The notes beneath the pieces are model-generated. The model did not search any database, was not told the DNA's origin, and saw only the letters and a list, made by a program, of their open reading frames with translations. From sequence record OQ718158.1: a DNA stretch of 64,000 bases, one strand, 5' to 3'. Positions 7,125 through 53,036 of the stretch are shown here, piece by piece. Each line of letters opens with the position of its first letter. The first letter of the stretch is position 1. The translations under genes were made by a program, and so were the position numbers.

Positions 7125-7376
7125 ATGTTTAAATATGTTTTATTTTCACTTGTATTGTTTACTGATATAGTTTATAGTACTGAATACCAGTGCTCCATTG
7201 CTAGACAGGAGTTTAGAAACGGTGAGTTCTATACCAAGTCTTACACTAGAGGATTGGTACATGACAATAATAAAACTATAGGGTTCAATGCATTTGATAA
7301 CAAAGATCGATATACGTCTGGAATACTATCTGAACGTAAGTCTGATATACTAGGTATCGAGCGTGAATTCCGGTGA
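7125..7376 (+). CDS. hypothetical exported protein (possibly N-half of a split gene)
   Basis: signal-like N-terminus, GAGGT SD. Confidence 0.6.
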   Translation: MFKYVLFSLVLFTDIVYSTEYQCSIARQEFRNGEFYTKSYTRGLVHDNNKTIGFNAFDNKDRYTSGILSERKSDILGIEREFR

Positions 7377-28999: not shown

Positions 29000-29070
29000 A
29001 TTTCCCTCCTTTATTCATTATACTATATTTAATTCAAAAAGAAAAGCCAGTATCAAGTACTGGCATTATG

Positions 29071-30180
29071 TTATTTTGGTAAATCAATTTTAGTAAAGAC
29101 TGCAACATCCTCGCTTGCCCCTGGGATGGCGTAATAAGAACCAGTACTATATACATCTCCGTCTTTTGTTAATATTGAAGTTAAACCATCACTAAAAAGA
29201 ACATCACTAATCTCACTAACTGAAACAGGTAATTGTAAATTAGTAGCACTATATATTGCACCAGTTTGAGAATTGTTTAATCCCAAACCACGGTTCGCCC
29301 CAACACCCTTCTGATATGTACTAGTAATTATAATTTGTGTAGCAGTATTTAATGCAGGTGAATTCGTCATAAACAACGGAGAACTATTAGGCAAAGAACT
29401 TACAGGAACTGCACGAAATGTAGTTGTATCTGAACTAAGAAAGTTTGGCGTTTGACCACATACGAAATATGATGTACCATTATAGTAATTAAATGCATTA
29501 CCACCTATAGCTGCATCTATTACTCCAGTACTACGTAATCCCCACGTGTTAATTTGTGTTCGGTTCCCCGTGCCATGCTGACCCCTGTCATTCCACCCAG
29601 AACTATATAACTTATTATCTAATGTAATATACATACTGTCATTTGAATTCGTCATTACTTTACGCACATTAGTAGCACATTGAGTTAATGTGTAAATTGA
29701 TGATGAACCAATACCTAAAGCACCACGATATCCATTAGCCCCTGCACCATAGAGTACTGAACTAGTGCTAAGTACAAATATTAAACCATACGAACATACT
29801 ATATCAGCAATTTCATTTACCGATAGTACACTCGTAAACCACGCAGTCCTATCAACTAATACAGTACTGTAAGAAGTCCCAGTAGAAGACGAAAACCAAT
29901 AAGTCTCACCAGCAGTCCATATAGTATTGTCACTCTTAATAACAACAACTGTACGATCACCAGCAAAAAAATTAGTAACTTCTGTACTCACTAATCTCCA
30001 TGAAGATACAGTGTTGGTATTACCATTTCCAGATTCACCACCTTGATTTCTACCTATGTAATATAAATCATGTGAATCAGTCAATAAGAATTGACCCTGT
30101 GTAGACGCACCAACTTTTATTATATTTTTAGGACCAGGTGTGATATTCCCATAATCAAACATTCTTACAAAAGGTAACAT
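29071..30180 (-). CDS. RCC1/BLIP-II-like beta-propeller protein (member 9)
   Basis: MLPFVRMFDYGN; LYSSGWNDRGQHGTG. Confidence 0.88.
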   Translation of the reverse strand: MLPFVRMFDYGNITPGPKNIIKVGASTQGQFLLTDSHDLYYIGRNQGGESGNGNTNTVSSWRLVSTEVTNFFAGDRTVVVIKSDNTIWTAGETYWFSSSTGTSYSTVLVDRTAWFTSVLSVNEIADIVCSYGLIFVLSTSSVLYGAGANGYRGALGIGSSSIYTLTQCATNVRKVMTNSNDSMYITLDNKLYSSGWNDRGQHGTGNRTQINTWGLRSTGVIDAAIGGNAFNYYNGTSYFVCGQTPNFLSSDTTTFRAVPVSSLPNSSPLFMTNSPALNTATQIIITSTYQKGVGANRGLGLNNSQTGAIYSATNLQLPVSVSEISDVLFSDGLTSILTKDGDVYSTGSYYAIPGASEDVAVFTKIDLPK

Positions 30181-30190
30181 ATTTCTCTCC

Positions 30191-31321
30191 TTAATTTAAT
30201 AATGCCCCTGGCAAATCCACTTTGACGAATTGTGCATATGCTGAGGAATTTTGATCAAAGTTTGGTCCCAATCCATAAAATGAGCTAATGCCGTCTTCAT
30301 TTGTGTATATGATATAAACGTTCTTTACATCATTTCCGCATATAAATCGAATGTCTTTCGTTTGTGTTCCCGCTGGAACATTACGAAGGTTCACAACGCC
30401 ATTACTTGCATTGTTATCAGCCGACGCAATTGGTAATTGATTTTGACCATATTGACCACGCATATTTTTTGCATCTAAACCAAACACAGTATCTGATACC
30501 GCACCAACTTTCAAAAATGAACCAAAACTATTATTGAATGACTTTGGAAATGTACCACTATAAACACTTCTCCCATCTGATAATACCGCTGAACTGAATT
30601 TCCCGCTATTCGATATGGCAAATTCATTGTAAGGAAGTGTACCCATTTTGGTATATACAGAATATGAATTAGTGGAAGTATTATCAATAATCTTATTACC
30701 ATTATATCCAATACCATACTGGTATCCGTCTGCATCTTGAACTATACACAAAGGACCACTTGGGGTTTGTGTCAACGAAACAACACGTTCAACTTGTATA
30801 TCACCAAATGTATTTCTTCGCCATGTTCTATCTATTATAGTACTAGTATTACCCAAAGATAATGCCACACTATATAATAGATTGTTTTCAGTAAAAATGG
30901 CAACATAATATGCGTGGTTAATAACTTGCTTCATCCCAGCATCAATAACTTCCTGTGGAATATGATCAGTAACATCCAACCAATCAAGGTTAGATGATGC
31001 AATATCTGGAGTACTGAATTTGTCAAATCTAGTTGAGCCACAAACTAGCACTCTATCATCATTTGTCAAAGCCACTGTGCTAGTCTGCATATTAGAACTG
31101 AATGATTTAACATTACTAATGTTAGACTTGTACCAACCCTTATCAGCAGCACCCACCGTGAATCCGGTTCCCATTGATCCACTTGTACTTGTACCATAAG
31201 CCCACATCTCACCACTATATGTTAGTGCCATACAGTGGCTTCCATTTGCTTGGAAATCCTTTATACCAGTGGGAGCAACCACTGTATTCCCATAATCAAA
31301 CATTCTAACAAAAGGTAACAT
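30191..31321 (-). CDS. divergent RCC1-like beta-propeller protein (member 10)
   Basis: MLPFVRMFDYGN; GEMWAYGTSTSGSMGTG; more degenerate repeats. Confidence 0.8.
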   Translation of the reverse strand: MLPFVRMFDYGNTVVAPTGIKDFQANGSHCMALTYSGEMWAYGTSTSGSMGTGFTVGAADKGWYKSNISNVKSFSSNMQTSTVALTNDDRVLVCGSTRFDKFSTPDIASSNLDWLDVTDHIPQEVIDAGMKQVINHAYYVAIFTENNLLYSVALSLGNTSTIIDRTWRRNTFGDIQVERVVSLTQTPSGPLCIVQDADGYQYGIGYNGNKIIDNTSTNSYSVYTKMGTLPYNEFAISNSGKFSSAVLSDGRSVYSGTFPKSFNNSFGSFLKVGAVSDTVFGLDAKNMRGQYGQNQLPIASADNNASNGVVNLRNVPAGTQTKDIRFICGNDVKNVYIIYTNEDGISSFYGLGPNFDQNSSAYAQFVKVDLPGALLN

Positions 31322-31398
31322 AACTAATTCTCCAAATTCAAATAATTATAATGTATTTACAAAAAAAATACCAGCACATATTTCAGTACTGGTATCAT

Positions 31399-32580
31399 TT
31401 ATGGTAAAATGATAGATTGTAACGAACTCATACCCAATGCTGGAACACTAGCCTGTGGTGCTGGAGAATTCAATTTTGGTGATGAAACCGCATATGACAT
31501 TCCTGAACCCAAATCTGGATCAAAAACTACAGCACAATAATTCCCACTATATATAAGTCCATTCTTGTATCCTTGTGCACTTTGAATGCATTTCGTGAAC
31601 GTACCAATATCTGTAGTGGCATTTATTAAGTTCCTCCCACGATAACCGCAGGTGTATATGAAATTATCATCGCCTATGTACATACTAGAATCCCCAGAAG
31701 AACTACATAGATACGACATATAAGCACGCATGTTTTTAGGAGCAACTGACAATGTACCTGCATAGAATTTATTATTCGAACCCGTAATATCACCATCACC
31801 CAATGCACCAAAACTTCCCCAGCCAGTACCATAATATCTCTTATCACTCAAGAATATAATACAGTTGTTATTACACATCTTGACTTGATATATCAATGAA
31901 GGATCAACCCCAGGGAATGATTCAGTGTATGTTAGAACAGCCAGATCAGTACTAGCATTACATTGATGATATGTATTAGTACCAGCGGACAAGATTGTTC
32001 CATTAGCTAACAGAATTCTCGCAGTACCAGTACCAGCAGTACAAGCAACTGCACTTCCTGCACTTCCGGTGTATATTTGTCTGAAAGTAAAGAAACCAAC
32101 AGTTTTACTTCCCTGCCCACTCCAACCAGTATTATCAACTCCACACGCCCATACTGAACCATCTTGCATGATCATCATTACACCAAAGCGTTCTATTGAA
32201 ATATAAACAATCTTCGTTGTATCAACTGCACTAAATCTAGAAGTTATATCAGTCCATACCTTAACACTTACCGCCGTCGCACTGGAAGTAGGATCTTCAC
32301 CAGCTATCATTATCCTCCCATTGTTAGTAAGATACATTGTCTGACTATAACCAGTACTACAAAACTTAACACTATCAGTCTCTGGAACTTTTAACCACTC
32401 GTTGTAACGTGTTACGTTAGTGTTATTACCTAACTGATAATAGTTATTCATCCCAGATACATATAACACACCATCCTTTATTAAACTATAAGTCGCACTA
32501 TAGTCACTACAGGTATAACGTGTACCCACAGGTCGCTCAACGACGTTCCCATAATCAAACATTCTAACAAAAGGTAACAT
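31399..32580 (-). CDS. RCC1/BLIP-II-like beta-propeller protein (member 11)
   Basis: MLPFVRMFDYGN; GVLYVSGMNNYYQLGNN, YGTGWGSFGALGDG. Confidence 0.88.
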   Translation of the reverse strand: MLPFVRMFDYGNVVERPVGTRYTCSDYSATYSLIKDGVLYVSGMNNYYQLGNNTNVTRYNEWLKVPETDSVKFCSTGYSQTMYLTNNGRIMIAGEDPTSSATAVSVKVWTDITSRFSAVDTTKIVYISIERFGVMMIMQDGSVWACGVDNTGWSGQGSKTVGFFTFRQIYTGSAGSAVACTAGTGTARILLANGTILSAGTNTYHQCNASTDLAVLTYTESFPGVDPSLIYQVKMCNNNCIIFLSDKRYYGTGWGSFGALGDGDITGSNNKFYAGTLSVAPKNMRAYMSYLCSSSGDSSMYIGDDNFIYTCGYRGRNLINATTDIGTFTKCIQSAQGYKNGLIYSGNYCAVVFDPDLGSGMSYAVSSPKLNSPAPQASVPALGMSSLQSIILP

Positions 32581-32653
32581 AATAAAATCTCCGTAATTAA
32601 ATTATATAGTATTTACAAAAAATACCAGTACATATTTCAGTACTGACCTATTA

Positions 32654-33775
32654 TTAAAAGGGCAACGGTAACTCAGTAAAAGTACTTACGTCCGGTAAAC
32701 CATACATTGAATTAGCATCACCACAGTAATACCACTTCGTAGAATCATGTACCACCGATAAACGCTGTGCACATAACACTTCCTGTATGTCATTAAACAC
32801 CATCGGGACTAACTCATATGTATCCGCAAATGAAGATACACCACCACTCGCATGAAAAGTATTCGTCCCAGCATAAAATAACTGATTAGTGTTCTTACCC
32901 ACAGCAAATGTCATCAATATCCCATCATTCTCCCATAAAGAAGAAAACTTATCAACACTACCAGAAAGCTCTGTGTAAGTACTCGTAATGGCACTCGCAG
33001 CCGCCGCATTACCCATCTGTTTATTCAAGTTCTGTCCAGCAATAAAATATCTCGTGCGTGCACTAGAATCAGTATATAATAACCCAGTGTTCGTAGTCAT
33101 CATTCCAATGTCCTTAATCGTCATACCAGTCTGTGAATAACTTAGATACGAAGTTAAACTACCATTATTACCCAACGAACCGTTATCACTCATGCCACAA
33201 CGATGTAATATACCACTTGTATCAACGTAGATAGTACTAACTAAACTCGTATACAACTCTTGTACATTATTCGCAATAAACACAGCAGTCGCCTTATTAC
33301 TAACCCCACCAAATGATAGGTTATTATCAAATCCCTTAGCGTATAATTGATTATTAGTAGTCAATAATCCAATCGTGAAATAAGACATTTTCATATCCCT
33401 TACTGTACTCAAATCTACTGCCCCAAATTGGTGCGTAACATCTGTCCATGTGAAAATCTGTGCACTACCAACACCACCCGTTTCAAACCATTTGTCACCA
33501 CAGTACAATATGCGATTACCCTTAGTAAAGATAACTGTTACCAATCCACTACCACACGCAAACTTTACATCACTTCTAACCTTCGTCCAATCAAGTACAT
33601 AGGTAGTGGTGTTATTACCTATACCTAACTTGCCATAACGGTTATAACCACGCACCCACAAATCACCACTCTTAGTAATTAATAGTAATGCGTCTCCTGT
33701 ACTTATTATTCGAAATCCCGAACTAGGATCAGGTACTTCATTTCCATAATCAAACATTCTAACAAAAGGTAACAT
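32654..33775 (-). CDS. RCC1/BLIP-II-like beta-propeller protein (member 12)
   Basis: MLPFVRMFDYGN; GDLWVRGYNRYGKLGIG. Confidence 0.88.
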   Translation of the reverse strand: MLPFVRMFDYGNEVPDPSSGFRIISTGDALLLITKSGDLWVRGYNRYGKLGIGNNTTTYVLDWTKVRSDVKFACGSGLVTVIFTKGNRILYCGDKWFETGGVGSAQIFTWTDVTHQFGAVDLSTVRDMKMSYFTIGLLTTNNQLYAKGFDNNLSFGGVSNKATAVFIANNVQELYTSLVSTIYVDTSGILHRCGMSDNGSLGNNGSLTSYLSYSQTGMTIKDIGMMTTNTGLLYTDSSARTRYFIAGQNLNKQMGNAAAASAITSTYTELSGSVDKFSSLWENDGILMTFAVGKNTNQLFYAGTNTFHASGGVSSFADTYELVPMVFNDIQEVLCAQRLSVVHDSTKWYYCGDANSMYGLPDVSTFTELPLPF

Positions 33776-33848
33776 ATATCCCTCCTTTATTCATTATACT
33801 ATATTTAATCAAAAAAGAAATGCCAGTACTCAAGTACTGGCATAGTAT

Positions 33849-34976
33849 TCAAAAAGGTAAATCAATTTGCTTAGTAATAATAGTATCTAACGGTATTGAA
33901 CACAATGAGAAATTCTTTCCACCCGTATTTTCAGGATTATATCCATTCATCCATACATTATTACCTTCGTAAAATGTATTCCAGTATAAAGACCCACTAT
34001 ATCGTGTATTCGAATTGAACGATGTAAAATTGAATTCTTGAAATGCTGTAAAATATGGAAGGGAACTTGAACTACTTCCCGTAAATGGGGTATGCCCAGT
34101 TGCTATTAGTTTGTTTGTATCTGCATTAATTAAAAATACAACACTAGTCGAATAGTCCAACGAATCAGGATGATATATATTACTCATATCACCTATAGTA
34201 AAACCAACATCAAAAACTTTACTATGTGCACCACTACCAGCAAAAGTAGTTCCAGTTGCATATATTTTATTATCAGATGTTATCATTACAAAACCAACAC
34301 CAGAAACAAAACTGCATTTTATATCATAAGATATATCATCAAACAACGGAACAAATGTGGTTGCATCACCCGATGTTGCTTTAACTTGAAAGCTGTTATT
34401 TGAACCTGAACCATATACAGTTCCATCGTTTTTAATCTTAAACAATGTATCGCCAAGGTAACCGCCAAATATATTATCCACATTAGTGTCAAGTACAGTC
34501 CACGCTGAAACATAATTTTTATGTCCTAAACCTAATGTACCACTTCGATTCCATCCTCTTCCATAAAGTGTTCCGTCTTTCATTAATATAAATGCTGTAT
34601 AACCACATAACATTTTTTTAATTTGGGTAACATCTATACCAGTGAAATACACAGCCCAGTCAGTATATCCTTGTTGGAAAGTATTAGAATTCGTGAATGC
34701 ATATGTTGAACCTGAACCATATATTTTATCACCTTTAATAACAACGGAAAACGATCCTAACCATAAGTCATCAACTTCAGTTGTGATTTGTTGAACTGCT
34801 CCTAACGATACAAACTGTGTACTTAAACCCGCATTATAGTTTGAATCTTCACCGTGTGCATATACAGTGCCATCTTGCATTAGAAACATTTCAAGAGTGT
34901 AACTAACAACACTTTTCTTTATATTATTAACTTCGATTATATTCCCATAATCAAACATTCTAACAAAAGGTAACAT
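33849..34976 (-). CDS. RCC1/BLIP-II-like beta-propeller protein (member 13)
   Basis: MLPFVRMFDYGN; GTLYGRGWNRSGTLGLG. Confidence 0.88.
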   Translation of the reverse strand: MLPFVRMFDYGNIIEVNNIKKSVVSYTLEMFLMQDGTVYAHGEDSNYNAGLSTQFVSLGAVQQITTEVDDLWLGSFSVVIKGDKIYGSGSTYAFTNSNTFQQGYTDWAVYFTGIDVTQIKKMLCGYTAFILMKDGTLYGRGWNRSGTLGLGHKNYVSAWTVLDTNVDNIFGGYLGDTLFKIKNDGTVYGSGSNNSFQVKATSGDATTFVPLFDDISYDIKCSFVSGVGFVMITSDNKIYATGTTFAGSGAHSKVFDVGFTIGDMSNIYHPDSLDYSTSVVFLINADTNKLIATGHTPFTGSSSSSLPYFTAFQEFNFTSFNSNTRYSGSLYWNTFYEGNNVWMNGYNPENTGGKNFSLCSIPLDTIITKQIDLPF

Positions 34977-35045
34977 AATTCCCTCCTTTATTCATTATAC
35001 TATATTTAATCAAAAAAAGCCAGTATCAAGTACTGGCATATTAAT

Positions 35046-36194
35046 TTACTGCAAAAATGACATATCGACTTCTGTATAATTAAGAACGTTCTGTCCAGAA
35101 ATACCACCCATTACTACTATTGCAAGGCCACAATAATATAATTTTCCAGTATCAGTAAGTATAAGTGAACCAGATGGGGTGCGTACCAAATTACAAGAGG
35201 TATTAAACGAAGTATATGAAGGAGTATAGGAGTACTGATTAATATTATTACCAACACCTAATTGACCAGACGCGTTGCTTCCAGATGCATAAAGTACTTC
35301 ATCACCTTTAACTATATGTGATGCCATGTTACCAACACAAGTATATAAACTATAAACACCTGCACTCAATAATGTGGGGGTTTTATATTGTATATCAGTA
35401 GAAGAGGAAGTACCACCTGTACCAAATTCGTTCCCATATTGTGCACCGAACTGTTTACCACAAGCGTACAAATTATTATCCGATTTGATAAAAAATGTAC
35501 TCTGATAACTTACATTAAAATCTATAACATCCGAAGAAATCATCGTCACCCCAGTAATAGAAGTTTGATTACCCGTGCCCAACTGGTAGTAATAGTTAAA
35601 ACCACAACCCCATAAAGTATTATCTTCTCGCAAATAAATGTTACCAACTGCCTTTTTAACCGAAGTTATAGTATCTACTCTTTTGAATGTGTTAAAAGAA
35701 TTAATGTTTGTGCCATCACCAAATGATGATATGTTCGATATATTGTTAGCTCCACAACAATACAATGTACCATCGTTTGTTATCAAATTCACCTTCATAT
35801 CATAAAAACTACTCATGTATTTTATATCAGAAACATTAATACCACTTGATGTTATCCACGTAGTACAGTCCGTCCACAAAGTTTTTCTATCAGTTACACC
35901 AGTGAATGCCTTCGTGTTACCAGTGATAAAAACTTTTCCAGTACCTTTCTCTTCATACAATTGACAATCACTACTGTTATCTTCCAATAGAACTCGTTTA
36001 ACATTCTCCGCACAAAGAATAAATTTACTCGATGCTACACCTGTACCAGTACCCCAATTCGTCGCAGAAGATGCATACAACTTATCAGTATAAGTATCAT
36101 GAAGATACATAGAATCACTGGAATATATTTTAAAACGCCCAGAGTTGGTAGGTGCTTCATTCCCATAATCAAACATTCTTACAAAAGGTAACAT
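35046..36194 (-). CDS. RCC1/BLIP-II-like beta-propeller protein (member 14)
   Basis: MLPFVRMFDYGN; LWGCGFNYYYQLGTG, LYASGSNASGQLGVG. Confidence 0.88.
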   Translation of the reverse strand: MLPFVRMFDYGNEAPTNSGRFKIYSSDSMYLHDTYTDKLYASSATNWGTGTGVASSKFILCAENVKRVLLEDNSSDCQLYEEKGTGKVFITGNTKAFTGVTDRKTLWTDCTTWITSSGINVSDIKYMSSFYDMKVNLITNDGTLYCCGANNISNISSFGDGTNINSFNTFKRVDTITSVKKAVGNIYLREDNTLWGCGFNYYYQLGTGNQTSITGVTMISSDVIDFNVSYQSTFFIKSDNNLYACGKQFGAQYGNEFGTGGTSSSTDIQYKTPTLLSAGVYSLYTCVGNMASHIVKGDEVLYASGSNASGQLGVGNNINQYSYTPSYTSFNTSCNLVRTPSGSLILTDTGKLYYCGLAIVVMGGISGQNVLNYTEVDMSFLQ

Positions 36195-36206
36195 ATTTCC
36201 TCCAAA

Positions 36207-37112
36207 TTATTTAAAAACATACTGCGTATTAACACGTGTCCCGTTGTCGTAACCAAGTACGTAAAATATTTCAGCACTATTATTAGAGCCAAATAATGCA
36301 CCAGTACTATTACTCAACGTTGTATTGATAGCTAATGGTATCCATTTGTTTTGCTCGGCATCATATTTTAATAAATTTAATGCACCATAAGATACTGCAT
36401 ATATACCTTTGTCATATCTATTGTAAATTATCTTACTAGGGTTAGCTCCACCAACTGCTGCCATTCTTGACCAAACCGCACTCTCTATGTGATATTTTTG
36501 TGCAGGAGTAGATCCTTGTCCTGTAAAATATATGTAAGTACCATCAGTGCACATATCACCACCACCATTGTTTGTTGTATTCCCAGTAGTACCTAACGAT
36601 GTCCATGTATTAGTACTCGGCGTATAACTATATAATGCAGTATTAGACGGTGAACCCCACAAATATATCTTATCCCCTGTAGTAATCATCTTACTATATA
36701 CTGCCTGGTTAGGTTTGCCAACACTTGTATTATTCAGTGTCCATGTATCAGAGCTTATGTCATATACATAAAAATTATTATTAGCAACATTCGCTGCACC
36801 TAAACCACCGAACAAATATATTTTTCCTTGATAGGCACACAATGCACTTCCATAGGTGGATACTGGTGGTGATGATAATTGTACCCATATTCTAGAATTT
36901 AAATTAAAACTCCATAACTGATTATCCTGGTTCGAAGTATTCATTATACCACCAAATATATAAGCAGTATTTCTTGATGCATCATACGTATAACCAAAGT
37001 TATTTCGTGCTGAAGGTACTGGTGATGTGGTAAATTGAGTTCGTATACCACCATTTGGGGCTGGTAATGGAGCTTCATTCCCATAATCAAACATTCTAAC
37101 AAAAGGTAACAT
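36207..37112 (-). CDS. Kelch-repeat beta-propeller protein with the same N-terminal tag (member 15)
   Basis: true start 37112 (MLPFVRMFDYGN); AYIFGG, IYLFGG, YVYDISSDTW, YSYTPSTNTW. Confidence 0.88.
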   Translation of the reverse strand: MLPFVRMFDYGNEAPLPAPNGGIRTQFTTSPVPSARNNFGYTYDASRNTAYIFGGIMNTSNQDNQLWSFNLNSRIWVQLSSPPVSTYGSALCAYQGKIYLFGGLGAANVANNNFYVYDISSDTWTLNNTSVGKPNQAVYSKMITTGDKIYLWGSPSNTALYSYTPSTNTWTSLGTTGNTTNNGGGDMCTDGTYIYFTGQGSTPAQKYHIESAVWSRMAAVGGANPSKIIYNRYDKGIYAVSYGALNLLKYDAEQNKWIPLAINTTLSNSTGALFGSNNSAEIFYVLGYDNGTRVNTQYVFK

Positions 37113-37160
37113 ATTTCCTCCTTTATTCATTATATCATATTTACCCCATAAACAAAACCC

Positions 37161-37189
37161 TTGACATCCTTTCAGTACTGGTGTACTAT
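37161..37189 (+). promoter_or_regulatory. sigma70 early promoter for the mini-gene operon
   Basis: TTGACA-17-TACTAT, AGTACT in the spacer; divergent from the Kelch gene promoter. Confidence 0.8.
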
Positions 37190-37214
37190 AGAAGGAATAC
37201 AAGGAGAACTACAC

Positions 37215-37442
37215 ATGACAGCTACACTTAAGTACTACATTAATACTCTAAATGAACTAGAGTACGGTAAGTTTCTCGCGGATAGTTCGTGGCTAATTGA
37301 GCTAAAAACACATAACAGTACTGGATGTAACCTTATGCTGAACAATGCACTTGATACCCTTGTAGTGAGTATTTTACACAGCACCATCTGCGGGGATAGC
37401 AATAAACAATTATCAAAAATCTTAGTACTGGTAGCTCTATGA
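37215..37442 (+). CDS. tandem mini-protein
   Basis: ATG 37215 after AAGGAG; KYYINTL...ILVLVAL. Confidence 0.7.
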   Translation: MTATLKYYINTLNELEYGKFLADSSWLIELKTHNSTGCNLMLNNALDTLVVSILHSTICGDSNKQLSKILVLVAL

Positions 37443-37651
37443 ACACTATGAACATTGAACAGTACTACATTGATGCACTGCCAACAAAAGGTCTACGAGA
37501 AAGCCTACTGTATACACAAAATAATTATATAAACCTCAAACATTGTCCTAAACTATTGAACTCGTACAGGAATAATAAAATAAGAAATGCTGTACAAGGG
37601 GTAGAAAGTATGCAATACTATTACATCCTAACCCTTTTAATCGAGCACTAA
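37439..37651 (+). CDS. tandem mini-protein (paralog of 37850)
   Basis: MNIEQYYIDALP...VQGV..YY.IL.L. Confidence 0.75.
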   Translation: MNTMNIEQYYIDALPTKGLRESLLYTQNNYINLKHCPKLLNSYRNNKIRNAVQGVESMQYYYILTLLIEH

Positions 37652-37652
37652 T

Positions 37653-37838
37653 ATGTATAAAGAATTCTACTGTAGTAAGCTGCACAAACAATACAGAGAT
37701 TCATTTCCCAATGAACCTATGGATATGAATAGTCCCTTTTATAAATTTGACTTCAGACTGGAGACACGTTATGCAATAGAACATCAATTTCCTGAAACTA
37801 AGTACTTATCTATCATGAACCTCATCTTTAAGTTCTAA
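37653..37838 (+). CDS. tandem mini-protein
   Basis: MYKEFY..KL...YL.IM.LIF. Confidence 0.75.
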   Translation: MYKEFYCSKLHKQYRDSFPNEPMDMNSPFYKFDFRLETRYAIEHQFPETKYLSIMNLIFKF

Positions 37839-37849
37839 AAGAGTACTAT

Positions 37850-38062
37850 ATGAAAACTATGAACATACACCAGTACTACTTAGATATTCTCCCTAAAGAT
37901 GTACAGTTCATCCTTAAACAAGAATACAGTACTTTAAAAAACCTTAAAAGATCCGCACCGAATGTATTAATCCTGCACCAAGAAAATGTAGTTGATAATA
38001 TTCTACAAGGTGTACCAGGGACCGAGTACTTTAACATAATAAGGCTAATTACATTACCATGA
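37850..38062 (+). CDS. tandem mini-protein (paralog of 37439)
   Basis: MNIHQYYLDILP...LQGV..YF.II.L. Confidence 0.75.
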   Translation: MKTMNIHQYYLDILPKDVQFILKQEYSTLKNLKRSAPNVLILHQENVVDNILQGVPGTEYFNIIRLITLP

Positions 38063-38244
38063 ATCATATATTATACTATTACCAAAATCTATCCGACAGG
38101 GACAAGTACACCCACAACTCCAATGTATGGTACTACAAACGCGGTAGTATAAGAGACAAACAACATTACTTCTGTATTGCTATAAAAGAAGCACTAACAA
38201 CTAAGTACACGTACAGAGCAGTACTGAAACTTATTGATATGTAA
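38059..38244 (+). CDS. tandem mini-protein, subfamily A
   Basis: ends KYTYRAVLKLI. Confidence 0.75.
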   Translation: MNHILYYYQNLSDRDKYTHNSNVWYYKRGSIRDKQHYFCIAIKEALTTKYTYRAVLKLIDM

Positions 38245-38254
38245 AGAGAATACT

Positions 38255-38437
38255 ATGAGCATTGAATTGTACTTAAGTAAATTACAGCCTGGCGATAGAT
38301 TCATCTACAATAAGTTCGAATTCAACTACAAGAACGGGAGCAACAAATATCGTCGAGGATACCTATATACAAGCACAAGAGATGCACAAAACGAAAAGTA
38401 CACATACAGAGAAGTACTTAAACTAATCTCTATTTGA
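38255..38437 (+). CDS. tandem mini-protein, subfamily A
   Basis: start trimmed to MSIELY; ends KYTYREVLKLI. Confidence 0.75.
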   Translation: MSIELYLSKLQPGDRFIYNKFEFNYKNGSNKYRRGYLYTSTRDAQNEKYTYREVLKLISI

Positions 38438-38445
38438 GGTAATAT

Positions 38446-38631
38446 ATGAATACATTTGAGTACTATACAAATAAACTATCTATGCCTGAAAGATCTCATC
38501 TCTATGTGTGGAGAAATGCGTATAAAAGCGGCAATAAACTTATACAAAGAAATTCCCTTACAGTGTGTACAAATTTAATTAAAGCAGAGTACCGCACATA
38601 TATTGAAGTACTCAAACTGATAGCAATCTAA
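38446..38631 (+). CDS. tandem mini-protein, subfamily A
   Basis: MNTFEYY; ends YIEVLKLI. Confidence 0.75.
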   Translation: MNTFEYYTNKLSMPERSHLYVWRNAYKSGNKLIQRNSLTVCTNLIKAEYRTYIEVLKLIAI

Positions 38632-38639
38632 GGTACTCT

Positions 38640-38819
38640 ATGCAAGAATTCTATATCTATAACCTCCAGCACAAAGATAGATACAACTATAATAAATTCC
38701 AAAGGTACTACACAGTCGGGAACAAAAGAGATAAAAAACGTTATCTACTCTCGTGTACAGTAGAAGCACAAAACGAAAAGTACACGTACAGAGAAGTACT
38801 TAAACTAATCTTAATCTAA
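38640..38819 (+). CDS. tandem mini-protein, subfamily A (59 aa, not in ORF track)
   Basis: MQEFYIYNLQHKDRY...EKYTYREVLKLILI, translated by hand. Confidence 0.75.
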   Translation: MQEFYIYNLQHKDRYNYNKFQRYYTVGNKRDKKRYLLSCTVEAQNEKYTYREVLKLILI

Positions 38820-38826
38820 GGTAGAC

Positions 38827-39015
38827 ATGAACACTTTTGAGTACTACTTCAATAAACTAAACCACATAGAACAAAGTATGCACAACTCATTTATTCAGCA
38901 CCATCAATCATCTGCACATGGAATTAAAAATATATCGATTGAGATTATCACTACCCGTGTACTGTCATCTGAACGTTATATGTATATTGATGTACTGAAA
39001 CTCATCTCTATGTAA
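38827..39015 (+). CDS. tandem mini-protein, subfamily A
   Basis: MNTFEYY; ends YIDVLKLI. Confidence 0.75.
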   Translation: MNTFEYYFNKLNHIEQSMHNSFIQHHQSSAHGIKNISIEIITTRVLSSERYMYIDVLKLISM

Positions 39016-39023
39016 GGAATAAT

Positions 39024-39203
39024 ATGCAAGAATACTATATAGAACACATAAGCATTAAAGACCGTTTCATGTACGACACCTTCGTGAAGTACTACAACCT
39101 GGCAACTAATAGTACTAAAAATATTAATCTCAATAGCTGCATTCATCACGCACTAACAAAAGATAATCCCTTCAGGGAAATCCTCGCTCTCGCATCTGTA
39201 TAA
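39024..39203 (+). CDS. tandem mini-protein, subfamily A (59 aa, not in ORF track)
   Basis: MQEYYIEHISIKDRF...FREILALASV; AAGGA SD; translated by hand. Confidence 0.7.
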   Translation: MQEYYIEHISIKDRFMYDTFVKYYNLATNSTKNINLNSCIHHALTKDNPFREILALASV

Positions 39204-39213
39204 AGGAAACCAA

Positions 39214-39873
39214 ATGAAACTTAATGCACACAGCAAACAATACCTTAAGCACTTTAAATACCTCAACAGTATTCAAGCAGAATCAGTTACATCATCTTAT
39301 ACGTATCACCCGAATATACTAAAGAAACGAAATAAAAAGAAAAAATCCAGAAATGTTCTCGTATCTAAGAACCTCAAATCGTACTTGAAGAAAAATAATA
39401 TAGCTCTTGCTTTTATTAATATCTATAATACTGATTTAAAAGTATTGAGTACTAATACCAGCACAAAAGCACTAAAGAATGCATCTATCTATATACACAT
39501 GGATAATATCCCGTGCACTATAATTCTATCTTTCGGGAATGTATACTTCTTCGGGAATTGTAATAGCACCCATGATATCAGTACTGCACAATTCCAAATC
39601 GGCGATATGTACTGCATGGGTTCAGAAAAAATACACGATAACATGCACTTCTTCCAAAAGCAACGTACTAACGAAACTGATACAGTACTGCAATTCCTCA
39701 AAGAATTACCAGGCAAAGAATTAACACCAGAAGAAGAATTCATGTACAGTACTGTAATCGATAATCCAGGACTCTATAAAAACGCGTACAAACTAACAAA
39801 ACATGTACAGGAACTTATCAGTACTGATAAGAAAATTCATCACCTCATTACGTATATTACAAACTATGTATAA
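39214..39873 (+). CDS. hypothetical protein, basic N-terminus, EE.xFQxS family
   Basis: LTPEEEFMYSTVID; paralog of 19835. Confidence 0.75.
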   Translation: MKLNAHSKQYLKHFKYLNSIQAESVTSSYTYHPNILKKRNKKKKSRNVLVSKNLKSYLKKNNIALAFINIYNTDLKVLSTNTSTKALKNASIYIHMDNIPCTIILSFGNVYFFGNCNSTHDISTAQFQIGDMYCMGSEKIHDNMHFFQKQRTNETDTVLQFLKELPGKELTPEEEFMYSTVIDNPGLYKNAYKLTKHVQELISTDKKIHHLITYITNYV

Positions 39874-40048
39874 AGAATACTACAAAGATAAAATCCCAAT
39901 GCATCTACAACACCATATACCAAACGTTGCATTGGGTATCAAAGATCACGCAAAGATAATGTTCCAACAATGTACTAAGTACACGCTCATATACGATGAT
40001 AATCCATATATGCTGTACTACGTAGTAATGCTAACATTCAGGTACTAA
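39866..40048 (+). CDS. tandem mini-protein, subfamily B
   Basis: start trimmed to MYKEYY; ends LYYVVMLTFRY. Confidence 0.75.
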   Translation: MYKEYYKDKIPMHLQHHIPNVALGIKDHAKIMFQQCTKYTLIYDDNPYMLYYVVMLTFRY

Positions 40049-40049
40049 T

Positions 40050-40229
40050 ATGCACAAACATAAAGAATTCTACCTCTCGTACCTTAATTCCGATATAGTA
40101 ACATCCAATACCTTCAGTACTAAAATTATCTATAATGAATTAATGAAAGAGTGTATTAAAGGTGCTATTAACCCTAAAGATACGTATGACTTGTACTATG
40201 CAGTACTAACCCTTGTTTTCACGAAATAA
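40050..40229 (+). CDS. tandem mini-protein, subfamily B (59 aa, not in ORF track)
   Basis: MHKHKEFYLSYL...ECIK...LYYAVLTLVFTK, translated by hand. Confidence 0.75.
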   Translation: MHKHKEFYLSYLNSDIVTSNTFSTKIIYNELMKECIKGAINPKDTYDLYYAVLTLVFTK

Positions 40230-40237
40230 CACATAAT

Positions 40238-40429
40238 ATGAATAACCACAAAGAATACTACATAGATAAACTCCCAATGCATCTACAATACCTTGTACCA
40301 ACAGAACCATTGGGTATAGAAAAAGACTACGAAAAAGACTACTTCGTTAAGTGCACTAAATCCTCGATAGATATTGAGGACTATAATCGAGTACTGTATC
40401 ACATCCTTTTACTAATATATAAGTACTAA
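40238..40429 (+). CDS. tandem mini-protein, subfamily B
   Basis: MNNHKEYY..LP..F..C..LY.ILLLIY.Y. Confidence 0.78.
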   Translation: MNNHKEYYIDKLPMHLQYLVPTEPLGIEKDYEKDYFVKCTKSSIDIEDYNRVLYHILLLIYKY

Positions 40430-40430
40430 T

Positions 40431-40619
40431 ATGAATAACCACAAAGAATACTACATACAATTTCTCCCCAGTATTTTTGAACACTACGCCAGATATAAAG
40501 TCCCCCTGGATAACGATTTGGCAGTACTGGGATTCAATAACTGCATAGAACGAAGTATAGAAAATAGTAGTAGTTATGACCAATTATATAACACTATCCT
40601 ACTTATATTCAGGTACTAA
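40431..40619 (+). CDS. tandem mini-protein, subfamily B
   Basis: same pattern as 40238. Confidence 0.78.
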   Translation: MNNHKEYYIQFLPSIFEHYARYKVPLDNDLAVLGFNNCIERSIENSSSYDQLYNTILLIFRY

Positions 40620-40620
40620 T

Positions 40621-40812
40621 GTGTATAAAGAATACTACATAAAAGATTTACCACCGCACCTTCAAGGTAATCTGTTAGAAGATGAACCTCGCGGTATCAA
40701 TGCTCAAAACGATAAAGTGTACTTTACTATGTGCACTAAAGCATGTATACTAGATTTTGACAGCTATCATCGAGTACTGTATCATGTACTGTACCTAGCT
40801 TTCGTGTACTAA
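40621..40812 (+). CDS. tandem mini-protein, subfamily B
   Basis: GTG start 40621 (VYKEYY); closest to 40238. Confidence 0.72.
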   Translation: MYKEYYIKDLPPHLQGNLLEDEPRGINAQNDKVYFTMCTKACILDFDSYHRVLYHVLYLAFVY

Positions 40813-40822
40813 AGAGGCCAAT

Positions 40823-41029
40823 ATGAACGAACAGAAAGAATTTTACACCAAACACCTCAGTGCATCAGAACAAATGTTTCTAAGGAGTGTATCACCTTTA
40901 AGTTTAGATACACCACACGCCAGAGATTGTTTTAATAATTGTATACGTATTACTCTAGAAGCTTTAGAAAATAATAACAAAAATATTCAGTACTCAGGCG
41001 TAATGGGACTAATATTCTTCTATGAATAA
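40823..41029 (+). CDS. tandem mini-protein, subfamily B (paralog of 41403)
   Basis: KHLSASEQMFLR..PLS.DT...NNCI. Confidence 0.78.
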   Translation: MNEQKEFYTKHLSASEQMFLRSVSPLSLDTPHARDCFNNCIRITLEALENNNKNIQYSGVMGLIFFYE

Positions 41030-41210
41030 CAAAGAATTCTACATAAACCATCTGGAACTAAACTCCCAAATGCTTATACCACTAAACCCAATAGATATCA
41101 AGGATAAGAAAAATACCCAACAATTCATTTACCATACACAGTGTGCTATCACTCCAGATTATAATACATATAAACTGTACTACATTCTCGCCCTAATATA
41201 CAGGTACTAA
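41022..41210 (+). CDS. tandem mini-protein, subfamily B
   Basis: MNNKEFY...LYYILALIYRY. Confidence 0.78.
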   Translation: MNNKEFYINHLELNSQMLIPLNPIDIKDKKNTQQFIYHTQCAITPDYNTYKLYYILALIYRY

Positions 41211-41211
41211 T

Positions 41212-41397
41212 ATGCATAGAGAATACTACACACAATTTGTTAAAGGGAACTACAAACACGCCGTCCCCGTAAACCCCTTAAATTCTAATGACCCAAGTAC
41301 TATATTCTTGTTCCATGACGCAATACGTACAGTACTCAATACTAAAGATGAACAGGTGCAGTACGTATTCTTACTATTACTTATATACAGACACTAA
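41212..41397 (+). CDS. tandem mini-protein, subfamily B
   Basis: MHREYY...LLLIYRH. Confidence 0.75.
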   Translation: MHREYYTQFVKGNYKHAVPVNPLNSNDPSTIFLFHDAIRTVLNTKDEQVQYVFLLLLIYRH

Positions 41398-41402
41398 CTA
41401 AT

Positions 41403-41612
41403 ATGAATAAAGAACATAAAGAATACTACTCCAAACACCTCAGCCCCTCAGAACAAATGTTTCTAAGGACTACAGCACCTTTAAGTACTGATACATATTT
41501 CGGCAGATTATGCTACAATAATTGTATTCAAATGACTTTAAACGCAAACGACAATAATAACAGTACTAACCTGTACTCAGGCATCATAGGTATACTATTT
41601 CTATATGAATAA
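41403..41612 (+). CDS. tandem mini-protein, subfamily B (paralog of 40823)
   Basis: KHLSPSEQMFLR..PLS.DT...NNCI. Confidence 0.78.
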   Translation: MNKEHKEYYSKHLSPSEQMFLRTTAPLSTDTYFGRLCYNNCIQMTLNANDNNNSTNLYSGIIGILFLYE

Positions 41613-41787
41613 AGAACATAAAGACTTCTATATAAGAAAACTAACATTCGTCCCCGTAAAAATATATAAAGAATGCGACCCAAGATTATACCTATGGCAC
41701 TTCAATGAGTGCATAAAAGATTCTATATACCCTAAGAACTACAAAGAACAATTGTGCTCAGTACTAACCCTAGTACTATCATATTAA
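41605..41787 (+). CDS. tandem mini-protein, subfamily B
   Basis: HKDFYI.KL..F.ECIK..VL.LV. Confidence 0.75.
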   Translation: MNKEHKDFYIRKLTFVPVKIYKECDPRLYLWHFNECIKDSIYPKNYKEQLCSVLTLVLSY

Positions 41788-41800
41788 TAGAGATAATACT

Positions 41801-41983
41801 ATGCATAAAGACTTCTATATAAGTAAACTCAAAGAGAATGAACAAGCATGGGTTAACAATTTAATCCCCCTGGCAATGACTCAATACGAATTTAATATGT
41901 GTACAAAGATTGTTTTAACTAGTAATGATATCTCTAATACGTACTACTTCCTATTAAGAGTACTATATGGTACTTTGAAATAA
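41801..41983 (+). CDS. tandem mini-protein, subfamily B
   Basis: MHKDFYISKL..QAW..FN.CT. Confidence 0.75.
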   Translation: MHKDFYISKLKENEQAWVNNLIPLAMTQYEFNMCTKIVLTSNDISNTYYFLLRVLYGTLK

Positions 41984-41994
41984 TAAGGTATACT

Positions 41995-42201
41995 ATGCAG
42001 AACATAAAAAACTATAAAGAGTACTATATAAGTAAACTACCACCGACTGACCAAGCATGGATTAGATCTATAATAGTACTGGCATTTAATAGATATGCAT
42101 TTAACAGATGTACCGAGATTGCTATAGACCCTTATAATATTAAAGAGAATGTACAGCATAATCAGTACTACTATATGTTAATGCTTATATATAGGAAGTA
42201 A
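41995..42201 (+). CDS. tandem mini-protein, subfamily B
   Basis: YKEYYISKL..QAW..FN.CT; last gene of the operon. Confidence 0.75.
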   Translation: MQNIKNYKEYYISKLPPTDQAWIRSIIVLAFNRYAFNRCTEIAIDPYNIKENVQHNQYYYMLMLIYRK

Positions 42202-42546
42202 TTCAACATATAGACAGGGGGAAGCTCCGCAGGGAAAGCATTGGACAGGCTTTAACATATGTTATATATGTTAAAATTCAGCCTGGACAAATGCGATCAC
42301 TAGGATTCTCCCCAGGCTAAACCCCGTAATCATATGTAGTCATAAGTAATCATATATAAACATTTAAGTAATCATTTATAATCACTGTAGTGATCAGTAG
42401 TGAGTACTAGAGTGTAATAGAGTACAGGAATGTGCACGTTTAATCAAGAACGTAGCAGTACTGATATGTCACTAAAGTAGGCAGAGGAAGTCTGCCGTAC
42501 TTTGTAGTTTCCAAGCTCCTTTTCCATTTTGCAAATTACATCAAAT

Positions 42547-42574
42547 GTAATCAAAAGTAATCAAAAGTAATCAC
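42547..42574. repeat. GTAATCAAAA tandem repeat (about 3 copies)
   Basis: direct reading; further TAATCA copies at about 42327-42385. Confidence 0.8.
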
Positions 42575-42623
42575 GCAATGATTAGTACTGAATTATTACT
42601 TTCACCTTAATTTCAATTACCCC

Positions 42624-42641
42624 TTTACCCTTCGGGGTAAA
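42624..42641. terminator. UUCG-tetraloop hairpin
   Basis: TTTACCC-TTCG-GGGTAAA. Confidence 0.55.
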
Positions 42642-42850
42642 ATTCCATTACCCCTTGAGGCTCCAGCAAAAAGTTGGTTAGTACTCCATCCTAAATCTCG
42701 ATCCTAAAAATTTTGGAGTACCTATGAAATAAAAGTTGGATCTTCGAAATTTGAAATTTACGTTGGGACGTTTATGATTTGTGGGATATAATGATGTTTG
42801 TAGTCGGGTAGTTTTCAAGAATATCAGCACTGAATAATGAAAGAAAGCTA

Positions 42851-42878
42851 TTGACATTATGATTCAGTACTGTATAAT
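42851..42878 (+). promoter_or_regulatory. sigma70 promoter with no downstream ORF
   Basis: TTGACA-16-TATAAT with AGTACT before the -10. Confidence 0.75.
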
Positions 42879-43281
42879 GTTCTACATAGGGTGATGAGTT
42901 GCTGCGAACAATTCATTTACTCTACCTCCTGTCGTGAGACAGTACAGAAAAGATAGTTCCTCCTGTGGTGGTACATCTTTTTGAACCTCATATGAAAATC
43001 GTAATAACAGTACTGATATTAACAGAATGGTGTCAGTACTGATTTTAATCTAAAGCATTATGCCACCAGCACAAGCTGGTGGATTCCCTCTAACAGTATT
43101 CAGTACTACATGATGGTCTTCATCCTCCTAGGGTAACATAGTGAGGGCTATGATGGCAGTACTGAATACTCCCTTTCAAAAGATAGATCTATGGTATAGT
43201 ACTGACGGATTTTGGGCGTAGTTACCCTGGATGGATTTTGGACGTAGATATGTCTAGCCCTCCAGAAGTCTGGAAGTAAAG

Positions 43282-43393
43282 ATGGCTATCCATCTAGACG
43301 GCTAAACGGCTAGATTTCTGGATGGCTAGATGGCTAGACGTTTGGACGGCTAAACGGCTAGATGGTTACACGTCTGGAAGTATAGACGGCTAA
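43282..43393. repeat. A(C/T)GGCTA(A/G) octamer cluster, 8 copies
   Basis: copies at 43282, 43298, 43306, 43322, 43330, 43346, 43354, 43386; GACGGCTAAACGGCTAGAT repeated at 48 bp spacing. Confidence 0.85.
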
Positions 43394-44234
43394 ATCAAAA
43401 TTTTATTTTGTTTTTCCAATAGTTCCCCTACCGCGTGGGGATAGTTTCCCCGCAGTATCTGGAGTTAGATTTTTCTGAATCTGGAATCATTATCTTATAA
43501 ACTGGGGGCAATGTCAACGACCTGGACGGATATTTTTAAAAATTTTTTCAGTACTGAATTTTGGGCGTAACTATGCACCCGGTGGGCTTGAGTCTTTCTC
43601 GACTTGATGGAACTATTATACAGTACTGAAAAAATAAAGCAATACCCTGGAAGCAAAAAAGTTTTAATTAATTTGCTTGCTATCCTGGGCCGGACTATGG
43701 TACTATATTTCAGTACTGAGAAAGTGCGTTTACCTGCTAGGGTGCGGGAGTGTATCCTTTTTTTATATCTTGAATTTTGGGCGTAATTCCGCACCCTCTG
43801 GGGTTTCCGCTTTCTCGCGTCTATGTAGTAATTATACGCTTTTTCAGGATCAAGTCAATACCTAAAAACAAAATAATTGAAAATAATTTAACGCGTTTAA
43901 ACGGCCCGTAAAGCCCTGGAATGATTGGAATGGTGCAAATGTATAGCTTAGGTGTATTAATGCGTTAGAATGCGTCTGAGGCCGTTTTACGGGGTATAGG
44001 GATGATTTGGTGGATTGATTCAGTACTGAATGATAGTACTACTATATAGAAAGATAGTTCCCCTGGATGGTTGCAGTACTGAATGATAGTACTGAATAAT
44101 AGTTCCCCTATATAGAAAGAAAACTATTTTAAAAGTATTTGTAGAAAGTACTTGCAAACTAAGTTTAACGGCGTATAATGTTTTACATCGAGAGCGGGAA
44201 CACTTCCCGCTACATATTACGAGAGATTAAAACG

Positions 44235-44597
44235 ATGGCGACTCAAATCACTAAAATTATTGCTAACCTGGTTAACTTTCGCGACGAGATGAAAGATCTT
44301 CCGGCAGAAACGGTAAAAATTCACATTTCAGCTTATCGGGAACTTATTGCAATGTTACCGCTTAAGCGTGAACAATACGCCGCGACCGTGATGCTTGATG
44401 CGATGATCCATAAGATGATCGCCAGTGATTTAACGATGGTTTATCAGTATATGGGCGAAAATTTCGCGGTGTATAGTAAACCAGTACCAGGAATGGAAAG
44501 TACAGAAGTATTACACGGTTTAAATTTAAAACAAGATGCATGGGATAATATGCCTCGTTTCCTGGTATGGGCTGACAGTGGCAAGATTTACGAATAA
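44235..44597 (+). CDS. early hypothetical protein
   Basis: true start MATQ 44235; upstream MFYIE extension is promoter DNA. Confidence 0.75.
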   Translation: MATQITKIIANLVNFRDEMKDLPAETVKIHISAYRELIAMLPLKREQYAATVMLDAMIHKMIASDLTMVYQYMGENFAVYSKPVPGMESTEVLHGLNLKQDAWDNMPRFLVWADSGKIYE

Positions 44598-52825: not shown

Positions 52826-53036
52826 AAAAAGTGGTTGACTCCGGTCAGCCATTTTGCTATTATATATTCATTGAGAGATAGCTCACTAGCCCACAGGGTG
52901 CATAAGTGTATCTATTATATGAGTATTGAGTACTGAAAACTATTTTTAAAAAGTACTTGCAAACTATCTCAATAAGCGTATAATGTTTTACATCGAGAGG
53001 GGGAAACGGTTTCCCCTGGTAATAAGGAAACAAATC

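Follow-up and report, generated by a model that had tools for sequence, protein, structure and literature searches.

Terminal blocks of early genes are found in several phages: Bacillus phage SPO1 carries a host-takeover module in its terminal redundancy, and phage T5 has a pre-early region. The present analysis concerns an array of very small genes in the jumbo Escherichia coli phage vB_Ec-M-J (OQ718158.1, Asteriusvirus, 378,573 base pairs (bp)). The window analysed is the last 64 kb (64,000 nucleotides (nt)) of this record, and the array, at positions 37161-42201 of the window (100% identity to OQ718158.1), holds the final genes of the phage's unique region. Like the terminal early blocks of SPO1, T5 and PA5oct (PMC7318152), it combines tiny genes without assigned function, located in or by long direct terminal repeats, with host-type promoters and with variation among relatives. 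Those blocks differ in being mosaics of unrelated genes in which a promoter usually serves one gene or a few, whereas the array consists of 21 paralogs that have coupled starts, stand behind one (perhaps two) promoters and lie just outside the repeat.

Small lineage-specific early open reading frames (ORFs) also characterize the hyperplastic regions of T4-like phages, where they lie between conserved modules and are frequently gained and lost. Gain and loss of small ORFs is the feature that these regions share with the array; to our knowledge they are not known as tandem arrays of a single family, and Asteriusvirus is only distantly related to T4. A conceptual analogy is provided by large eukaryotic DNA viruses, in which terminal multigene families expand and contract (the 'genomic accordion') and a role in host interaction has been shown by experiment. 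Tandem paralogs near a terminus, unequal recombination, chimeras and lineage-specific expansions are common to both, but the eukaryotic viruses belong to another realm, their proteins are larger and unrelated, and for the array a host role is something that we infer. Small anti-defence proteins (anti-CRISPR, anti-restriction and sponge proteins) resemble the array's products in length (~60 amino acids (aa)), narrow distribution, early-type promoter and lack of outside homologs, whereas anti-defence loci are typically mixes of unrelated genes rather than sets of 21 paralogs.

Jumbo phages are candidates for therapy, and the function of most of their genes is not known. The array is a compact and well-delimited set of about 21 proteins with natural variation in copy number, and it offers a tractable entry to accessory genes of early type.

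A tandem family of small genes beside the terminal repeat

The ORF listing and a direct reading of the sequence give 22 small ORFs (m01 to m22) of 59-75 aa, arranged head to tail on the + strand from 37215 to 42201, with gaps of 1-13 nt or overlaps of 4-8 nt between cistrons. The sole break is X219, an ORF of 219 aa at 39214-39873, which brings the block to 23 genes; the packing of 22 ORFs claimed in the original prediction holds, and the interruption by X219 was missing from it. Its three additions to the ORF track (38640, 39024 and 40050) are confirmed, each encoding 59 aa and so falling under the usual 60-aa cut-off, and its start of the span at 37161 proves to be the -35 hexamer of a promoter rather than an ORF, the first ORF most likely beginning at ATG 37215. 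Eleven of the 22 mini-ORFs are annotated in the GenBank record of vB_Ec-M-J; in the records of WPEC5, E9.1 and 121Q, which come from other pipelines, all are annotated as hypothetical proteins. Between the end of the array and the right terminal repeat there are 274 bp, and the genes of both lie on the same strand.

All-against-all BLASTP divides the mini-proteins into three clusters, A (m05-m10, 38059-39203), B (m03 and m11-m22) and C (m02 and m04), with m01 as an orphan, where two subfamilies had been proposed. Paralogy was assessed with leave-one-out hidden Markov models (HMMs) scored with the window's 747 other six-frame ORFs as background. By this measure paralogy goes well past chance, 21 of the 22 ORFs ranking first, with E values from 1e-16 to 0.07, and models applied across clusters mostly rank members first or second against the same background. 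Profile-profile comparison (hhalign), carried out on cluster alignments enlarged with relatives from a profile search, links cluster A to B (96%, E 4e-9, 56 columns) and cluster C to B (89%, E 2e-6, 58 columns); the direct comparison of C with A was not significant. For m01 the leave-one-out E was 1.6 (rank 12), and hhalign with its orthologs gave 0.4-15%. On this sequence evidence the array comprises 21 demonstrable paralogs, not the 22 originally supposed, in one superfamily of three clusters, and m01 appears to be an unrelated or unrecognisably diverged first gene. Family HMMs run over 769 six-frame ORFs detected no further member elsewhere in the window.

Evidence of coding comes from several sides. 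Against eight relatives, the pooled ratio of nonsynonymous to synonymous substitution rates (dN/dS) is 0.37-0.44 and the differences by codon position number 499:319:631, position 2 being the lowest; for single genes dN/dS ranges from 0.17 to about 1.1-1.2 (highest in m09, m13 and m22). Tetramers like the Shine-Dalgarno (SD) sequence precede 15 of the 23 starts in the block, compared with 8 (9%) of the region's 88 remaining ATGs, and the eight starts that have no such motif overlap or directly abut the preceding stop, a pattern expected of translational coupling. All 22 frames stay open across genomes, and their syntenic counterparts are open even in the JNE01 genome at 30-60% identity. The comparison of isolates by dN/dS, which the original prediction had suggested as a check, thus gives a pooled value of about 0.4 and, with the SD-like enrichment, supports a real, translated-looking tandem family. 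Each retained paralog is under moderate purifying selection, and the array is, with high confidence, a real, expressed, paralogous gene family.

The family is narrowly distributed. A tblastn search of 50,697 phage records found it in 36, all of them Escherichia or Salmonella Asteriusvirus, and a profile of the 21 paralogs drew only 35 matches at E <=0.001 from 1.84 billion representative proteins; neither search returned a relative outside Asteriusvirus. The 35 matches are ~60 aa long, save for one truncated protein of 41 aa and one repetitive protein of 705 aa; the latter (P0031), matched over 11 short stretches, was set aside as a repetitive or low-complexity artefact (blastp E 0.71 against the family). 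The most divergent matches sit in the same array architecture, with a gene of ~224 aa in mid-array. Pfam matches to EB1 and TPGS1_C, obtained in a scan of 10 proteins, were rejected as sub-threshold noise, and the cluster A and B profiles found nothing among PDB sequences (E 0.55 or worse).

All four cluster B members tested (m03, m13, m16 and m22) match phrog_11711, a PHROG without assigned function, with E values of 2e-15, 7e-27, 7e-12 and 3e-19, respectively; no PHROG was matched at E <=0.01 by m01 or by the cluster A and C members tested. This PHROG and the Asteriusvirus hypothetical proteins (121Q gp249-265, phAPEC6 gp542c) resemble the array through the cluster B matches and the orthologs in 121Q, WPEC5 and E9.1, whereas phrog_11711 leaves out clusters A and C and m01. 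The genes are, then, already known as hypothetical proteins in databases, and cluster B as a PHROG. The literature searched does not treat the array, Asteriusvirus transcription or the CAGTACTG motif discussed below; the union of the three clusters, the operon anatomy, the position at the repeat boundary, the array dynamics and the fold without a solved relative are likewise absent from it.

Array turnover and predicted fold

Comparison of ten Asteriusvirus genomes bears out the notion of a birth-and-death array. The genomes carry 15-22 members each (2-6 of cluster A, 1-2 of cluster C and 9-13 of cluster B), single units such as m04 and m20 are missing from particular isolates, and an m16-like unit occupies slot 3 in the 121Q-type arrays of other isolates. 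Two database proteins are recombinants: P0005 joins the head of m11 (19/20 residues) to the body of m13 (41/41), and P0004 combines m13 with an m15-like tail. In JNE01, whose array proteins are 30-60% identical, there are 1:1 orthologs of m02, m10, m11 and m18, and beside these stand lineage-specific expansions, since most of cluster A, m13/m15/m17, m16/m19 and m21/m22 resemble paralogs within their genome more than they do JNE01 genes. The JNE01 array amounts to 16 small ORFs when its m01-like first gene and one unannotated ORF are counted; the latter is a family member of ~59 aa that lies in an annotation gap (about 7196-7375 of the JNE01 stretch examined). These comparisons show that the family evolves by birth and death, through unequal recombination between neighbouring units, and it documents this process for tandem gene families in phage genomes even if its products prove not to be binders.

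The pairs that had been singled out as recent duplicates are not recent. Their members share 38-60% of amino acids, and their synonymous divergence (dS) of 0.6-1.2 is 3-6 times that between orthologs of main-clade isolates (<=0.21), so the duplications predate the sampled main-clade isolates. The list of pairs was also incomplete, the closer pairs m06/m08 and m11/m13 having been overlooked.

Structure prediction, another check that had been proposed, gave a confident helical fold for m13, a member of cluster B. The AlphaFold2 model, for which the 21 window paralogs served as the alignment, has a predicted local distance difference test score (pLDDT) of 91.6 and a predicted template modelling score (pTM) of 0.75, and it places helices at residues 3-9, 14-17, 30-45 and 49-62, the two long helices being linked by a 3-residue turn. 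On this model m13 is predicted to be a compact soluble protein whose four helices, two short and two long, form a bundle around a Tyr/Leu/Ile-rich core. A Foldseek search of the model against the PDB gave nothing significant (best E = 3.8), and a match to AcrIIC4 (E = 9.2) was rejected as not significant. Against BFVD, the matches at E about 1e-3 or better are ~60-aa proteins of the family type, one of them from 121Q.

The conserved positions of cluster B were read from an alignment of 29 sequences numbered on m13. The most constant part is the N-terminus, with Lys at position 5 (25/29), Glu at 6 (24/29), Tyr or Phe at 7 (27/29), an invariant Tyr at 8 (29/29) and Leu at 12 (25/29); further on follow Phe or Tyr at 36 (28/29), Cys at 39 (15/29), Ile or Leu at 44 (27/29), Leu at 59 (27/29) and Tyr at 63 (22/29). 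Mean column entropy is accordingly 1.5 bits over residues 1-12, 2.7 bits over residues 13-45 and 2.2 bits over residues 46-63. The same distinction recurs among orthologs, where 7% of gene-sites vary at the family-conserved positions versus 20% elsewhere (Fisher p = 1e-5). The idea of a fixed scaffold with a variable middle or surface is therefore borne out both by paralog entropies and by ortholog variability; mapped on the model, the core positions are predicted to be fixed, and residues 14-35 and the helix surfaces to be variable. A conserved core with a variable surface is usual for any small domain.

The mini-proteins are hydrophilic, with a negative grand average of hydropathy (GRAVY) in all but one of the 22, and their Tyr content (10.3%) is unusually high. 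A membrane location was considered and rejected on account of these GRAVY values and because the hydrophobic C-terminal stretch forms a 14-residue helix in the m13 model. Charge differs between clusters: four of the six members of cluster A are basic (isoelectric point (pI) 9.4-9.6, net charge +5 to +6), and the members of cluster B, with pI 5.5-9.3, range from neutral to acidic.

Transcription and possible roles of the mini-proteins

The array is headed by a sigma70-like promoter on the + strand at 37161-37189, made up of TTGACA, a 17-nt spacer with CAGTACTG, and TACTAT (10/12 in a consensus scan). Across the ten Asteriusvirus genomes the -35 hexamer TTGACA is invariant, and the -10 hexamer TACTAT is changed, to TACAAT, in JNE01 only; the 110-bp divergent intergenic region is nearly invariant as a whole and also holds the SD motif of m01. 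The claim of one promoter finds support in this single conserved head promoter and in the lack of intergenic room for more, and it is called into question by a promoter-like site within m15 (40757-40785, + strand; TTGACA, 17 nt, TATCAT; 11/12). In this candidate internal promoter, GAGTACTG stands just 5′ of the -10 box, as it does in several terminal-repeat promoters. The site shows 0-2 changes in main-clade relatives, a conservation that is uninterpretable because it falls within coding sequence.

Early timing is suggested by the promoter type, by the position next to the terminal repeat and by analogy with two other phages. In PA5oct, a related phage, the genes of the terminal repeat are transcribed early and at high levels (PMC7318152), and in CBB, a Rak2-like phage, RpoD-like promoters are concentrated ahead of short hypothetical ORFs interpreted as early take-over genes (PMC5259590). 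In the reading proposed here, the host RNA polymerase would transcribe the block early, as one (or two) polycistronic messenger RNAs, and the products would form a panel of small protein-binding modules with differing specificities that act on host targets in take-over or counter-defence. A role of the mini-proteins as host-manipulation or counter-defence factors is plausible; the full chain, from early transcription by the host polymerase to a panel of binding modules against host targets, is the reading that we favour, although it is somewhat less likely than not to hold in full. If the products are target-specific binders, the array would constitute a natural library on one scaffold. A bolder version, which we consider rather unlikely, would have the roughly 21 mini-proteins share a new helical scaffold, with every one directed at a different host target, for example members of a diversified defence or stress-response family. 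The array would then be the phage counterpart of the immune-evasion multigene families of eukaryotic viruses, expanding and contracting through unequal recombination beside the terminal repeat as hosts change.

Several observations weigh against the panel of host-directed binders. With the candidate promoter in m15 (40757-40785), the block may comprise more than one transcription unit, and no Asteriusvirus expression data or transcriptome was found in the literature searched. The fold was modelled for one cluster-B member only, and for clusters A and C the sharing of it is presumed from homology. No likeness in sequence or fold to a known anti-defence, RNA-polymerase-binding or other characterised protein emerged from Pfam, Foldseek or the profile searches of the PDB, and the small binders or inhibitors of a diversifying host defence family expected in the original prediction find no direct support. 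Selection is mainly purifying, with only m09, m13 and m22 near a dN/dS of 1, so that a strong arms-race signature is lacking, and most paralogs are kept across isolates, which a housekeeping role for the phage would fit as well. Finally, the strongly basic character of cluster A (+5 to +6 in four of six members) points to nucleic acid rather than protein targets.

This last point leads to the alternative that survives best, in which the mini-proteins are small nucleic-acid-binding or regulatory proteins, acting in transcription or translation or as readers of a DNA motif, and not binders of host proteins. The motif in question is the palindrome AGTACT, which the window contains 288 times where about 22 copies would be expected (~13-fold), together with CAGTACTG, which occurs 61 times against about 1 expected (about 60-85-fold). 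The excess is genus-wide, being found likewise in 121Q and JNE01. Density per kb is highest in the array (7.9; 40 sites within 37161-42201) and the terminal repeat (6.6), compared with 2.8 in the first 37 kb. The motif is found in each of the three reading frames as well as outside coding sequence (examples at 37173, 42865 and 60707), and several copies lie directly 5′ of the -10 box in sigma70-type promoters. AGTACT might serve as a binding site, as a target of modification or as part of a promoter.

Given this excess and the placement in promoter spacers, some reader protein would be expected, and an all-helical protein with two long helices and a 3-residue turn, as in the m13 model, could be thought to suit that role along with the basic members of cluster A. 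Cluster B, however, is neutral to acidic, no helix-turn-helix or other DNA-binding fold was found by Pfam or Foldseek (best PDB E = 3.8, no Pfam domain), and a single motif would need no set of 21 diverged paralogs. Nucleic-acid binding or regulation as the function of the family is accordingly judged distinctly unlikely.

The motif also bears on how the protein alignments are read. Of 19 Val-Leu pairs in the array, 17 are encoded as GTA-CTN (9.2 expected), as are 43 of 87 in other long ORFs (15.7 expected); Ser-Thr is encoded as AGT-ACT in 7 of 9 (1.1 expected) and 55 of 131 (21.4 expected), respectively; and the ratio of TAC to TAT for a Tyr that follows an NAG codon is 20:0 in the array and 36:16 in other long ORFs. 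Synonymous codon choice is thus biased towards AGTACT. Within the array the motif coincides with the N-terminal Glu/Gln/Lys-Tyr-Tyr and the C-terminal x-Val-Leu of the family, and part of the motif conservation may for this reason be reinforced at the DNA level, although AGTACT accounts for neither the full-length homology nor the pattern of constraint. The array thereby illustrates how a motif in DNA can shape 'conserved motifs' in proteins.

A further alternative, which takes up the paralog-specific partner of the original prediction, is that the family serves the phage's own biology, as chaperones, adaptors or regulators for another expanded phage family such as the RCC1-like virion proteins. 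The array divergently adjoins tandem RCC1-like paralogs in every genome examined, phage phAPEC6 has eleven RCC1-like proteins, some of them virion-associated (PMC7247149), and the retention of most paralogs under purifying selection would suit a partner of this kind. The promoter types differ, however, the array's being sigma70-like and the neighbours being virion genes of late type. The 62 virion proteins of phAPEC6, which include the neighbouring RCC1-like gp549 and gp551, contain no member of the array family (PMC7247149), and array copy number shifts between 15 and 22 among isolates with no established match to the number of RCC1-like genes. Such a phage-internal role is quite improbable.

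That the ORFs are non-functional, whether as chance ORFs, decaying duplicates or by-products of selection on DNA such as that for AGTACT, is scarcely credible: the overlap of the terminal protein motifs with AGTACT, the codon bias (17/19 against 9.2; 20:0) and the lack of annotation for half of the ORFs in OQ718158.1 are outweighed by a dN/dS of about 0.4 with codon-position differences of 499:319:631, by 22 frames kept open across genomes and in their JNE01 counterparts, by the SD-like enrichment and the confident m13 fold prediction, by full-length profile homology that reaches past the motif positions, and by the finding that family-conserved positions are also the most constrained among orthologs.

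Individual cistrons and surrounding DNA

All cistrons of the block lie on the + strand. The first, m01 (37215-37442, 75 aa), is conserved in position, has the Shine-Dalgarno sequence AGGAG and a dN/dS of 0.46, and is the one whose family membership is not demonstrable. The two members of cluster C, m02 (37439-37651, 70 aa; 4-nt start/stop overlap with m01) and m04 (37850-38062, 70 aa), are 38% identical, and m04 is missing from E9.1, SP27, 121Q and SD-15. Between them lies m03 (37653-37838, 61 aa), a cluster B protein with a leave-one-out E of 2e-7.

Cluster A begins with m05 (38059-38244, 61 aa), which is basic (pI 9.4). It continues with m06 (38255-38437, 60 aa; 54% identity to m08, leave-one-out E 8e-12) and m07 (38446-38631, 61 aa), which is matched at E 4e-6 by a model built from non-A members only. 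There follow m08 (38640-38819, 59 aa), unannotated in the GenBank record, m09 (38827-39015, 62 aa), with a dN/dS of about 1.1, and m10 (39024-39203, 59 aa), which has a 1:1 ortholog in JNE01.

At the boundary between clusters A and B, here and in every array seen, stands X219, which is unrelated to the mini-protein family. It corresponds to phrog_29152 (E 1e-114) and is restricted to the genus Asteriusvirus; Pfam and PDB searches returned no match for it, and its AlphaFold2 model was too poor to use (pLDDT 39). Counterparts are present in JNE01 and in metagenomic arrays, and in some Salmonella-infecting relatives the gene is represented by shorter products of 120-190 aa. The possibility that its C-terminus is a fused family member was rejected, no family HMM having matched it.

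The remaining cistrons belong to cluster B. The start of m11 (39866-40048, 60 aa; JNE01 ortholog at 53%) overlaps the stop of X219 by 8 nt, and m12 (40050-40229, 59 aa) is followed by the modelled representative m13 (40238-40429, 63 aa) and by m14 (40431-40619, 62 aa). Translation of m15 (40621-40812, 63 aa) would start at a GTG 1 nt past the m14 stop. The next protein, m16 (40823-41029, 68 aa), is 59% identical by blastp to m19 (41403-41612, 69 aa); between the two are m17 (41022-41210, 62 aa), with an 8-nt overlap with m16, and m18 (41212-41397, 61 aa), whose JNE01 ortholog is 59% identical. Overlapping m19 by 8 nt, m20 (41605-41787, 60 aa) is missing in WPEC5, and m21 (41801-41983, 60 aa) precedes the last cistron, m22 (41995-42201, 68 aa), with a dN/dS of about 1.2.

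Base composition of the coding strand over 38001-42000 shows more C than G (GC skew -0.16 to -0.19), with A strongly exceeding T (skew +0.16 to +0.22), and the sign of the GC skew is opposite to that of the + strand genes in the terminal repeat. This skew fits proteins in which Tyr, Asn, Lys, Ile and Leu are abundant and Gly, Ala, Val, Asp and Glu are scarce.

On the other side of the head promoter, the divergent neighbours occupy the - strand from about 29000 to 37202. They include five tandem RCC1-like ('regulator of chromosome condensation') paralogs of ~380 aa and, upstream of the array, a 301-aa virion structural gene (36207-37112). RCC1-like copy number also varies between isolates.

Downstream, m22 is followed by a structured non-coding tail on the + strand (42202-42475), the 274 bp that lead to the terminal repeat. 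The RNA fold of 42190-42480 has z = -4.0 relative to shuffles; no canonical terminator was seen after m22, and the first terminator-like hairpin is at 42480-42496. The ~2 kb from 42202 to 44235, across the junction of unique and repeat DNA, contain no convincing gene and ten CAGTACTG sites. Iteron-like repeats occur there as GTAATCA-type copies at 42326-42396 and 42540-42573 and as an 8-mer present about 12 times at 43294-43392, and no ORF follows the perfect TTGACA-16-TATAAT promoter at 42851-42878. This region is a candidate origin, packaging or non-coding RNA region; a search of 36900-44400 against Rfam gave no match, and ARAGORN found no transfer RNA in the window.

The right direct terminal repeat (42476-64000, + strand) is given by the record's repeat_region feature as 21,525 bp, a length also reported in PMC13070987, and the first 3000 bases of the record are identical to the window from 42476 onward. 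Its + strand carries 11 perfect (12/12) sigma70-type promoters and many of 10-11/12; 93 sigma70-type sites were found where 59 were expected, and the TTGACA-17-TACTAT type recurs. The repeat is densely filled with small + strand genes, nearly each with its own near-consensus sigma70 promoter, and these promoters are often directly followed by a GC-rich hairpin at the 5′ end of the transcript (for example after 55519 and 60707). Three positions, 56486, 59761 and 62517, share a 28-nt hairpin overlapping a TTGACT -35 hexamer, and a variant of it occurs at 52828.

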